Of a stretch of DNA of 64,000 nucleotides, positions 26,525-62,462 are shown in pieces (positions within the stretch are counted from its first letter, which is position 1; each line of letters opens with the position of its first letter). Origin of the DNA: Trichosphaerium sp. ATCC 40318 (Eukaryota > Protista > Tubulinea); assembly GCA_038496445.1 (NCBI GenBank), contig JALMLS010000323.1, positions 88,233 through 152,232 of the forward strand. The letters are read 5' to 3'. The notes beneath the pieces were generated by a model. It saw only the letters and a list, made by a program, of their open reading frames with translations. It was not told the DNA's origin and made no database searches. Made by a program: the position numbers and the translations under genes.

Positions 26525-26595
26525 GGGACAATGGTGTAACGGAAGCACATGGCATTGAAGGTGCTGCAGTTCAGGTTCGATTCCTGGTTGTCCCA
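26525..26595 (+). tRNA. tRNA with GAA anticodon (Phe), copy 2
   Basis: Same cloverleaf as 2407-2477 but with G1-C72. Confidence 0.8.
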
Positions 26596-26603
26596 CATAC
26601 GTT

Positions 26604-26691
26604 GCAGAGGTGCTCGAATTGGTTAATGAGGCTGCGTTAAGGACGCAGTGTGGTGTGTAACCACGTGTGGGTTCGAGTCCCACTCTCTGCA
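26604..26691 (+). tRNA. tRNA-Leu(AAG)
   Basis: Same acceptor, D and T arms as the Leu(CAA) copies; anticodon arm CTGCG-TT-AAG-GA-CGCAG; T7 terminator. Confidence 0.93.
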
Positions 26692-26908
26692 TTTTTTTGA
26701 TTATGACAGAAAAAGCAAGTTTATTGACATTTGAACAAAATAACACAAGCGCGTTGGGAAGAACGATTTAAAAAGTTCGCAGTTTAACACATAAAATAGA
26801 CGTTGAATCTTGGTAGCAACCATAAATTTGAAGCATTTTTAAACTGTTGGCAATACATATACAGAAGCAATAGAGTTTTATTATATTACAGGCCGACTAG
26901 GTCTATTC

Positions 26909-51330: not shown

Positions 51331-51847
51331 GGTGGTCTTTTATAAGATGAATTAAATAGTCACGTGGCGAGTTGAAAGTCCGGCAAAATAATTTTTGCGT
51401 GGTTACGTTTCAACACACAAAAATAACTACATGCCCAAACAATGGCTGTTGGGAGCTTTGAAATGGTAGTGACTTAACGTGATTCAAGTATTGGTGAGAC
51501 AGCCTTAATCGAATCACAAGTGTTAAGTAAGTCCTAGTGCCTGCCTTACATATTACAGGCAGTGACATTGGAAGCTTGCTACTAATGCTACATAATCAAG
51601 ACAGGTGCACCATGTAGAACGACAACACGTGAGTTATAACCTTTTCAGAAAAAGAAACAGGAGACTATAGCAATTATTTACCTTGGTTTTGTTGTAACGC
51701 TTCATCTGTTGTTGACTTTGAGGTTATTAGTTAACGACTACTGTAGATTAGGGCTATTAAAAATGACACTTGTAGGTAGCATTGGTACTAATAAATTGAC
51801 ATTGGAGAGACTGGTTTACCAAGCGTACTTGCTTCTCATCAAAAAAA

Positions 51848-51934
51848 TGCAGAGAGTGGGACTCGAACCCACACGTGATTTTCATCACATTGTGTCTTGA
51901 ACACAACCTCATTAACCAATTCGAGCACCTCTGC
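51848..51934 (-). tRNA. tRNA-Leu(CAA), copy 3
   Basis: Reverse complement matches 2486-2572. Confidence 0.93.
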
Positions 51935-51942
51935 AACGTATG

Positions 51943-52013
51943 TGGGACAACCAGGAATCGAACCTGAACTGCAGCACCTTCAATGCCATGTGCTTCCATT
52001 ACACCATTGTCCC
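51943..52013 (-). tRNA. tRNA with GAA anticodon (Phe), copy 3
   Basis: Reverse complement matches copy 2 except C16>T. Confidence 0.8.
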
Positions 52014-58383: not shown

Positions 58384-58577
58384 AAATAGACCTAGTCGGC
58401 CTGTAATATAATAACTCTATTGCTTCTGTATCTGCTAAATTACGCCATAAGAGTGAATGTGAGTTTAAAATGCTTCAAATTTATGGTTGTTAAACCGAGA
58501 TTAAGTGTATCAACTGTGAACTTTCTGAATTGTTTTTCCCAATGCACTTGCGTTGTTTTGTGACATAGTCAAAAAAA

Positions 58578-58664
58578 TGCAGAGAGTGGGACTCGAACCC
58601 ACACGTGATTTTCATCACATTGTGTCTTGAACACAACCTCATTAACCAATTCGAGCACCTCTGC
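58578..58664 (-). tRNA. tRNA-Leu(CAA), copy 4
   Basis: Reverse complement matches 2486-2572. Confidence 0.93.
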
Positions 58665-58672
58665 AACGTATG

Positions 58673-58743
58673 TGGGACAACCAGGAATCGAACCTGAACT
58701 GCAGCACCTTCAATGCCATGTGCTTCCATTACACCATTGTCCC
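58673..58743 (-). tRNA. tRNA with GAA anticodon (Phe), copy 4
   Basis: Matches copy 3. Confidence 0.8.
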
Positions 58744-60223: not shown

Positions 60224-60460
60224 AAAAAAAGACACTTGGGACTCACACAGCCGTACAGGCCTACCAGGAGTCCCTGCAGACTCTAAGTCCTGCGGCACAC
60301 CTTTACCAGACAACTGGTGGTTAGCGAAGCCAGTGTGCAGGACACCATGCCCGAGCGGCGTTAAATGTTCATATCGTTAGGCCCGAACCCCCTGGCGTGG
60401 GTACCCTTCTGGGACCATATGGTACCAATATTGAACCGTGTACGCTCAGCATACCTCCTT
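60224..60460 (-). ncRNA. Unidentified structured Pol III ncRNA (~235 nt)
   Basis: GC-rich island with multiple long stems; upstream TATAAAA and TCCCATAA; T7 terminator. Confidence 0.8.
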
Positions 60461-60483
60461 AGTAATATAATAGGCGATTGTCC

Positions 60484-60523
60484 TTTTATACACCTACAAA
60501 CATCCAAAAAATAAATTATGGGA
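60484..60523 (-). promoter_or_regulatory. Type-3 Pol III promoter: DUSE-like TCCCATAA (60523-60516) + TATAAAA (60490-60484)
   Basis: Matches the Dictyostelium upstream sequence element consensus WCCCAYAA at about -63, plus TATA at about -30, as for U6. Confidence 0.78.
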
Positions 60524-61045
60524 TCACTTCACTGAAATATTCAGTGTACTACTCAAAATATGGATAATGCACATTTCAAAACGCTCACAGACCCTTGTAG
60601 TTGCTAGTTTCATGCCTGAGATCAGTATCAGCGATGTCTTTCTTTCTCAAAACGTGCTTGTAAGCGATTGTTTCCTATTTTATACTAAACGAAGAGACAA
60701 CGTGAAATCTCGATGATTTTCATTTGCGTTACTTGTAAAATTACTGCTTCCACACTTTGATTGGAGGTACCGTTATGTACTCTACGCCTTAAAATAACAT
60801 CTGTCGTGGTTTACAGACTTGTAAGTCGCTTGTCGTACTTCTTAGAATCACTATGTTCTTAAGTAGCTCTGCTCACATGGCGACCTTGGAGTATTAGCAC
60901 AGCCCAAGGCTAGGAGGCTCTTTTAAACCTATGAACTCTTTTCATTGCCAGCAACTGGCGAAAAATCTGTGTTGGTTTTTCTTGCTGACGTTTCAGGCAC
61001 TTAATGCACTTGCACAATCACCAAATGCAACATTGTTAAACGAAA

Positions 61046-61131: not shown

Positions 61132-61186
61132 CATATTAAATCTTATTTTGGTGGGTGTGGGTTACCTCCACTTTTCTTTTTTCCGT

Positions 61187-62462
61187 TTACTGGTATTTGT
61201 CTTTCAAAAAAGCTTCAAGCTCTTCAGGGTTATACCTAATCACACACAATTAAGATTGCATTTATAAGCTGTTTACTTACCCATAAGGACCTACACCAGT
61301 TTGAAAAACAATTTTTCCATCATCAACAACATACAAGCGCTGTAAAATGTAGTCAGAGATTGTTAAGTTCATAAGAAAAAAAAATGCTTTAAGCGAACCT
61401 CTGGTCTTGCTTCCCATGCAATATCCGTCTCGTTTTCAATACAATCAATAACAATCTCGTCTTTAATACTCATCTCAGAAATCATATTCTTAAGAAGATA
61501 ATGAGTAGACGAAAAATGACTAAAAAATAAACTGTACCTTTGTTATTGCCATACGTGCTTCTAGAGTTTTAGGTTGAACATAGCATACTCCATCCGATTC
61601 ATTAGAATCTAGTGACCATTCATCAGATGAATGTGCCTCCACTATATACACAACAAGGTAATCAACCTTATAGCCGAGTCAGTAAATGTTTCGAAAATGG
61701 TTTACAAAAAGTTATTATTTGGTAGACCTGGTACACAAATCTTACAACGTCATTAACCGCTCCTGAAAAACGCTGTGTCCACACACTTTTTAAGTTGACC
61801 AAAGAAGAAAACACAGCCATTTCAAGGACACTGTTTGAAAAAAAAAAAAAATGAGATTTGATGCAATGTTTTACAAAACAAGTTATATCAGTTTCTTAAG
61901 TATAGGCGTACCTTGTTTTTGTAAGATGCAGCAATTTTAGAAATATGCTGCAAGTGAAGGCGAAATGGTGGTCTGAAAAAATAAGAATTCTGTGAGTGAC
62001 AACTTTGGTTTAAAGTAAAGTCGGAAAATAAATAAAAAGGAGTTTGTCAAAACAGTACCAGGTGTAGCTTCCAAAGTTGATCAATATGGGTCTATTACGC
62101 GTAATCACTGACAGAAAGTCCATTTCTTTACCGTTTAAATCAAAAACTACGCCGTTAAAAAAAGTCAGCTCAGTCGCTCTACAAAAACGGTACCTCTTCC
62201 TCCTGGTGCTTGATCACCTACTTTAACTGTAGGATTATGTAGATTTTTCATGTATGTAGTTTTTAAAGCACTTCCACGCTTTTCAAGCATTTCTATCATA
62301 TTTTGCTTCTTTATGTGCTCCTTTAGGTATATTAGAGCTAACGGTTTACAACACAAACCGAACCTTTACTTGTTCGACTGTCATGCTATTTAAACGCTTT
62401 TGTAGGCCCCCACGCCATCTCTTACTTGCCGCAGCACACTTAGGCGGAACGCTTGCCGCCAT
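61187..62462 (-). CDS. Iodothyronine deiodinase-like selenoprotein
   Basis: Spliced: KVGDQAP, RPILINFGSYT-U-PPF, YLVVYIVEAHSSDEW, IVIDCIEN...ARPERLYVV..GKIVF..G.GPYGY.PEEL. Confidence 0.9.

Follow-up and report, generated by a model that had tools for sequence, protein, structure and literature searches.

A gene on the minus strand of the window (the whole 64,000-nt stretch of Trichosphaerium sp. DNA analyzed here) is likely to belong to a previously undescribed, lineage-specific family of structured noncoding RNA (ncRNA) genes in this marine amoeba, the copies that we compared all coming from one genome. This conclusion is drawn from what can be observed directly, namely the anatomy of the gene, the equivalence of its promoter with those of known RNA polymerase III (Pol III) genes of the same genome, conservation among paralogues, and compensatory base pairs. 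ncRNA has hardly been explored in Amoebozoa outside Dictyostelium, and the terms "ncRNA" and "snRNA" are both absent from the text of the paper that describes the Trichosphaerium sp. draft genome (70.87 Mbp, 37.69% G+C, 710 scaffolds; PMC10521059). Our genome-wide searches covered 70.28 Mb in 642 contigs. The initial annotation of this locus missed two points: the gene is one of a family of five paralogues, and a cassette of about 200 nt upstream of it is common to about 100 other genes.

Anatomy of the locus

Every sequence reported in the initial annotation was found in place on the minus strand, that is, TCCCATAA, TATAAAA, AAGGAGGTATGCTGAGCG starting at 60460, and CCCAAGTGTC running directly into seven thymidines (T7) (Table 1). 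The unit predicted from A60460 through T7 is 237 nt long with 56% G+C, and in the composition profile G+C is about 0.53 across the unit, compared to 0.33–0.37 in its flanks (0.557 for the predicted RNA body alone). A scan for bacterial-type terminators found nothing relevant at the locus.

Table 1. Features of the window gene and of its predicted RNA (window coordinate = 60461 minus RNA position; base-pair changes and broken or mismatched cells refer to the five copies)
Feature	Window position	Strand	RNA position	Observations
Distal upstream cassette	60524..60680	minus		16-mer core AATGTGCATTATCCAT at 60575–60560
USE/DUSE-type element TCCCATAA	60516..60523	minus		−63 to −56; 25 nt upstream of TATA box
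TATA box	60484..60490	minus		as 8-mer TATAAAAG, 22 nt before A60460; TTTAAAAA is at this distance from +1 in the genome's own U6, RNase P, and SRP genes
Predicted RNA body	60231..60460	minus	1–230	56% G+C; model R1 finds five copies
5′ domain	60339..60460	minus	1–122	H1, H2, H3; conserved unpaired CCUAACG, UAACG
H1			2–8/116–122	A-U to G-U; one G-G mismatch, in the window lineage
H2a			10–12/111–113	U-A to A-U; no breaks
H2b			13–17/105–109	U-G to U-A, C-G to U-G; no breaks
H3			25–29/90–94	C-G to U-A, G-C to G-U; no breaks
Central three-way junction	60295..60338	minus	123–166	best conserved stretch of the RNA
H4, closing helix GCACAC/GUGUGC			123–128/161–166	G-C to U-G, C-G to A-U; one U-U, in the C34/C269 lineage
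H4a and H4b, junction hairpins UGGC-UUC-GCUA and ACCA-GUUGUC-UGGU				two cells broken in H4a, one in H4b
H5, small bulged hairpin	60276..60293	minus	168–185	in all five copies; G-C to G-U only, no breaks
H6, 3′ terminal hairpin with conserved GGUAGGCC	60238..60274	minus	187–223	7 unpaired nt and the U tail follow it
H6 base			187–191/219–223	A-U to U-A, C-G to U-A; 0 of 25 cells broken
T7 run, predicted Pol III terminator	60224..60230	minus		source of the 3′ U tail; paralogue similarity stops here

The expression data available to us are cDNA contigs from three runs of one sample (X1–X3), one of these contigs carrying a template-switch adaptor. The gene adjoining the locus (61186–61668, minus strand) is correctly spliced in them, with three introns of 45, 59, and 49 nt that have GT..AG ends. 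No transcript of Pol III size is present among the X1–X3 contigs, and none would be expected there if the cDNA was primed with oligo-dT, as we assume from the adaptor. The sole contig on the locus (from X1) is 284 nt long and covers 60308–60570, or +153 to −110; it matches exactly the variants of the C490 paralogue described below, and its adaptor is on the side expected of an antisense 5′ end. Because it crosses both the transcription start site and the promoter and carries its adaptor in the antisense sense, it is not the predicted Pol III product.

Promoter architecture

Taken alone, the 8-mer WCCCAYAA is not above chance frequency in the window (10 observed, 7.8 expected), so the case rests on the whole arrangement, which is far from what chance would give, and its recurrence, and the same promoter and RNA arrangement does recur in the four paralogues. 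As references we used genes of this genome located with Rfam models, comprising 16 copies of U6 and 31 matches to U2 over the cut-off, three copies of SRP RNA (127–130 bits), and, as a tandem pair on contig C4, an RNase MRP RNA (111 bits) and an RNase P RNA (121 bits). The U6, RNase P, MRP, and SRP genes are like the window gene in having a USE of the form [ACT]CC[AC]A[CT]AA near −60, a spacing of 25–28 nt from there to a TATA-like box downstream, about 22 nt from that box to +1, and a T-run terminator (Table 2); the window gene itself reads USE, 25 nt, TATA, 22–23 nt, +1. In U2 the USE and the TATA-like sequence are only about 20 nt apart. Since the layout and spacing of the window gene are those of U6, RNase P, MRP, and SRP and not those of U2, we place it in the Pol III group. 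The U6-type layout originally proposed for it (USE/DUSE, TATA, and oligo-T) is thus borne out by the genome's own genes, and this promoter layout supports, short of proof, its transcription by Pol III.

Table 2. Promoter and terminator of the window gene and of reference genes of the same genome
Gene	USE	USE-to-TATA spacing	TATA-like box	Distance to +1	T run
U6	ACCACAA	26 nt	TTTAAAAA	22 nt	T run
RNase P	ACCACAA	25 nt	TTTAAAAA	close to 22 nt	T run
SRP	CCCACAA	26 nt	TTTAAAAA	close to 22 nt	T run
MRP	CCCACAA	28 nt	TTAAAAG	close to 22 nt	T run
U2 (Pol II)	ACCACAA	20 nt	ATAAAT only	~22 nt	none after the gene; T6 inside the RNA
Window gene	TCCCATAA	25 nt	TATAAAAG	22 nt to A60460	T7

Within this genome, U2 (L127–L132) and U6 (L039–L044) share an ACCACAA-type USE and differ in its distance from the TATA-like box (~20 versus 25–28 nt); the rule by which USE-TATA spacing distinguishes Pol II from Pol III genes in plants runs in the opposite direction. 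The RNase P and MRP genes on C4 (221083–221379 and 221636–221925, loci L047 and L045) have the same orientation, with about 250 nt between them and a separate USE and TATA promoter for each. In contrast to the window gene, none of the U6, RNase P, MRP, and SRP genes has the distal cassette, which occupies −65 to −230.

Search for a known RNA

Rfam cmscan at gathering thresholds returned eight tRNAs and nothing else from the whole window. Four tRNA-Phe(GAA)/tRNA-Leu(CAA or AAG) pairs are present (2407–2573, 26525–26692, 51847–52013, and 58577–58743), and their members are 6 nt apart, which suggests dicistronic tRNA units. When matches with E up to 10 were admitted, the 800 nt around the locus gave one meaningless match on the opposite strand and both diverged paralogue lineages gave noise only; over the three lineages these noise matches were GlsR14, ST7-OT4_3, ZNRD1-AS1_2, and sRNA162, all with E of at least 1.2. 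RNase P, MRP, and SRP RNA have no match at the locus and strong matches elsewhere in the genome, and were rejected as candidates. The initial annotation is borne out on two points: Rfam has no match for U6, U3, SRP, or RNase P/MRP RNA at the locus, with the MRP, RNase P, and SRP genes found elsewhere, and it offers no confident match for any copy of the RNA, which had been called novel or highly diverged. Beyond the genome, a metagenome scan with a 21-nt core pattern gave three matches, none with flanking similarity and thus attributable to chance; a scan of viral contigs gave no match to this pattern and one isolated match to the cassette core.

A family of five copies and its conservation

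BLAST identified four further copies in the genome, which we designate by contig: C490, with 97% identity to the window copy (C151), C306 (75%), C34 (71%), and C269 (69%). R1, the covariance model derived from these copies, detects all five and no others genome-wide, at 220–303 bits, when matches with E up to 1 are considered. The pairs C151/C490 and C34/C269 are located within duplicated segments of kilobase scale whose flanks are 92–95% identical, and C306 and C34 have about 1 kb in common; we therefore count three independent lineages, with identities of 69–75%. Between the window lineage and C306, C34, and C269, only the cassette and the RNA are similar, and the T run marks the limit of this similarity. 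Each of the five copies has T5–T7 at its end, and none contains an internal run of T4; the RNAs predicted from C306, C34, and C269 are 261–271 nt long.

The duplicated segments permit a comparison of each RNA with its own flanks. The RNAs of C151 and C490 differ by 2 substitutions and 2 gap columns in 231, compared to 109 substitutions (2.5–6% of aligned bases) and 423 gap columns in the flanks, so that the RNA is the better conserved (Fisher's test, p = 0.011 for substitutions and 1.6e-13 with gaps). In C34/C269, the RNA has 4 substitutions in 258 and no gap columns, and the flanks 77 substitutions and 98 gap columns; by substitutions this RNA is no better conserved than its flanks (p = 0.31), and with gaps included the difference is again apparent (p = 7.5e-4). 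The paralogues are separated by indels of 5, 8, and 10 nt, which, together with a longest open reading frame of 49 aa in the unit, argue against coding.

Predicted fold and covariation

Thermodynamic stability does not set this RNA apart from shuffled sequence (MFE z-scores of −0.04, −0.17, and −0.44), and when the raw MAFFT alignment was given to RNAalifold, the covariation term came out slightly positive (+1.34). The latter is partly due to indels that shift the strands of helices out of register; we therefore placed each helix by context in each of the five sequences and tabulated the pairs, the helices being curated by hand (Table 1). Tabulated in this way, six pairs in four helices show two-sided compensatory changes, and H2a, H2b, H3, and H6 have no broken cells. 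The junction hairpins are less informative, H4a having a C-G to U-G change in one copy and H4b no pair changes. With only three lineages and helices of our own choosing, this covariation is supportive, short of statistical proof.

The fold drawn by eye in the initial annotation can be followed only in part. All of its helices are complementary in the window copy. Across the paralogues, AUGC-UGAGCG/CGCUCG-GGCAU and the hairpins UGGC-UUC-GCUA and ACCAG/CUGGU are kept with compensation, as are GUUC.../...GAAC in its outer half and GGGACUC/GAGUCCC at its base. Two helices fail outside the window lineage, GUACC/GGUAC with 7 of 25 cells non-canonical across the copies and GUCCUGC/GCAGGAC with 8 of 35; H5 competes with the latter and supplants it. 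Pairing inside the 5′ domain is ambiguous, since a CCRGG segment (S2) covaries with either of two YYGG partners; in this variable region, GGYCC and GGGCC may possibly pair to give a pseudoknot. Conserved motifs outside the helices are CCUAACG with further copies of UAACG (two to three per RNA), YGGUA (three per RNA), and GGUAGGCC.

From the promoter, terminator, and fold we infer how such a gene would be expressed. An snRNA-type activator complex would bind the USE at −63/−56, and TBP together with a Pol III-specific factor would assemble on the TATA box at −30; Pol III would then start at or next to A60460 and stop in T7, producing an RNA of about 232–237 nt with a 3′ oligo-U tail. In the folded RNA, H1/H2 would close the 5′ domain, the three-way junction would lie at the center, and the small hairpin and the long terminal hairpin would follow on the 3′ side, leaving the repeated CCUAACG/UAACG and YGGUA motifs and GGUAGGCC exposed and unpaired. 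Its most likely role would be that of a protein-binding scaffold or the RNA of a regulatory RNP.

An upstream cassette common to other orphan genes

The approximately 130 nt upstream of the TATA box are found in at least 44 other places in the genome at 77–93% identity, and the 16-mer core occurs 111 times genome-wide, compared to 0 occurrences of the reversed control. We fetched 67 further cassette loci and examined 93 non-identical units, 58 of which have a canonical USE and TATA box at a fixed distance. Downstream of the cassette, the units belong to at least 10 mutually unalignable families, including one of ~320 nt with 22 or more near-identical copies, one of ~472 nt with 9 copies, a superfamily of ~240 nt, and others of 178, 256, 300, and 318 nt. 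An Rfam scan of 26 other cassette loci at gathering thresholds found neighboring tRNAs only, and a search for k-mers shared across families found nothing beyond the terminator. Model R1 has no match in 47 other cassette loci, so the search offers no link between the family of the window gene (family 1) and the others. None of the RNAs is as well conserved between families as the cassette; in the cross-family alignment, conservation extends to about −230, with weaker blocks further upstream. On this pattern, a single ~200-nt cassette would drive at least 10 unrelated families of predicted orphan RNAs, or about 100 genes in addition to family 1, and the window gene is probably co-regulated with them.

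In some loci the cassette is tandemly duplicated with a spacing of about 170 nt. At the window locus, the 11-nt sequence ACAATCGCYTA (gene strand) is directly repeated, with one copy just downstream of the TATA box (60471–60481) and the other within the cassette, in its 5′ part (60661–60671); this repeat and the tandem copies suggest that a promoter module gave rise to the cassette by tandem duplication. Some U2 genes contain a short related element (...CATTATCCA...). About 13 loci have the distal core and lack a canonical USE/TATA (L026, L065, L070, L075, L078, L080–L083, L085, L108, L113, and L056); these share a different downstream sequence and may be another class of gene or decayed copies.

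One could envision family 1 as one part of a larger system, in which about 100 genes of at least 10 structured-RNA families (180–470 nt) under one cassette form a co-regulated regulon of Pol III RNAs, perhaps linked to the complex life cycle of the organism and acting in RNPs of undescribed kinds; we put this forward as a tentative proposal. If these are real RNAs, about 100 genes of this amoeba are given to orphan Pol III-type RNAs, the DUSE/USE and TATA logic of Dictyostelium and plants extends to Tubulinea, and a concrete promoter signature becomes available for finding such genes in other protists.

Alternative explanations

The conservation of the cassette itself raises the question of whether it is the real duplicating unit, a promoter or enhancer module whose downstream sequence is largely passenger, in which case family 1 would have no RNA function of its own. 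The cassette is 77–93% identical over ~130 nt between families whose RNAs cannot be aligned, it occurs in tandem at ~170 nt, some copies have no USE/TATA, and the folding z-scores of the window RNA are near zero. However, the transcribed part of family 1 can itself be aligned among its three lineages (69–75%) and has compensatory pairs, its end coincides exactly with the T run and it never contains T4, and in C151/C490 changes are fewer in the RNA than in the flanks; we consider this explanation unlikely. It could also be that the transcript is a precursor cut into smaller functional RNAs, with no stable RNA of ~235 nt. Nothing points to this directly, and it is the hairpin-rich 3′ half and the lack of excess thermodynamic stability that leave room for it. 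Conservation and compensation run along the whole length, including the long-range helices H1–H3, and thus argue for a full-length folded molecule, so that we give processing of this kind little weight. A SINE or another mobile, retroposed element would likewise be multi-copy and of Pol III type, and GGTTCGGGCC resembles a B box; this stretch, however, is not kept in the C34/C269 lineage, and an external promoter cannot travel by retroposition. The initial annotation had named high-copy dispersal with TSDs as the mark of a SINE, and what we find is five copies only, mostly in segmental or homeologous duplications with kilobase flanks 92–95% identical, and no TSD, TIR, or A-tail bracketing the unit. 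A mobile origin is accordingly the least probable of the explanations considered here.

Two known kinds of Pol III RNA were considered as well. A 7SK-like identity, suggested at the outset, would give the RNA the role of a Pol III scaffold for sequestering a kinase of transcription elongation, and the type-3 promoter, the 3′ hairpin with U tail, and a length of a few hundred nucleotides are common to both. A 3′ hairpin and U tail are generic to Pol III transcripts, however, and no 7SK model matches any of the three lineages in Rfam at E up to 10. In 7SK, paired GAUC motifs in the 5′ hairpin form the HEXIM site, and GAUC is absent from all five copies. HEXIM (PF15313) is also unmatched in the genome, a weak argument in that the controls were silent as well and the genome is intron-rich. 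7SK is not known outside animals, and five diverged copies are a further point against it; the suggestion is not supported, and we regard a 7SK analogue as very unlikely. Also very unlikely is a telomerase RNA transcribed by Pol III as in plants and ciliates, in which the template/pseudoknot core would correspond to the 5′ domain and the activating domain to the three-way junction. The core-enclosing helix, the possible pseudoknot, and the distal three-way junction loosely recall such RNAs, and the conserved unpaired CCUAAC is a 6-nt permutation of CCCUAA. Against this, the longest match to (CCCUAA)n is these 6 nt, no copy contains a template of 1.5 repeats, and five copies diverged to ~70% are not expected of a telomerase RNA. 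This comparison presumes a telomere repeat of the TTAGGG type; the genome has (TTAGGG)4 in only 3 places, and 20 contig ends are non-telomeric. A lineage-specific family of structured RNAs thus remains our preferred reading.

Comparison with known systems

Among known systems, 7SK shares with family 1 a type-3 Pol III promoter, a size of a few hundred nucleotides, a 3′ hairpin, and an oligo-U tail, and differs in that the window family has no match to its model, lacks GAUC, and is multi-copy and diverged. The Pol III telomerase RNAs of plants and ciliates are alike in USE and TATA, size, a helix-enclosed core, and a distal junction domain; the window family differs from them in its five diverged copies and in the shortness of its template-like stretch (6 nt). 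Class I RNAs of dictyostelids are roughly 40–65 nt long with a short terminal stem, whereas the window RNA is ~235 nt and multi-domain, with a TATA box and unpaired ends; its length, its ends, and the lack of an Rfam match argue against a dictyostelid Class I RNA. Class I RNAs are further defined by pairing of the 5′ and 3′ ends in a terminal stem and by an 11-nt motif beside the 5′ strand of that stem (PMC7919456). The cassette core also contains AAATGTG, the "TGTG box" of Dictyostelium, which here is upstream of the USE and not downstream of it. In their general organization, the DUSE-driven ncRNA genes of Dictyostelium nonetheless resemble the window gene, having [AT]CCCA[CT]AA about 60 nt upstream, a T-run after the gene, and multi-copy, lineage-specific families (PMC7919456).
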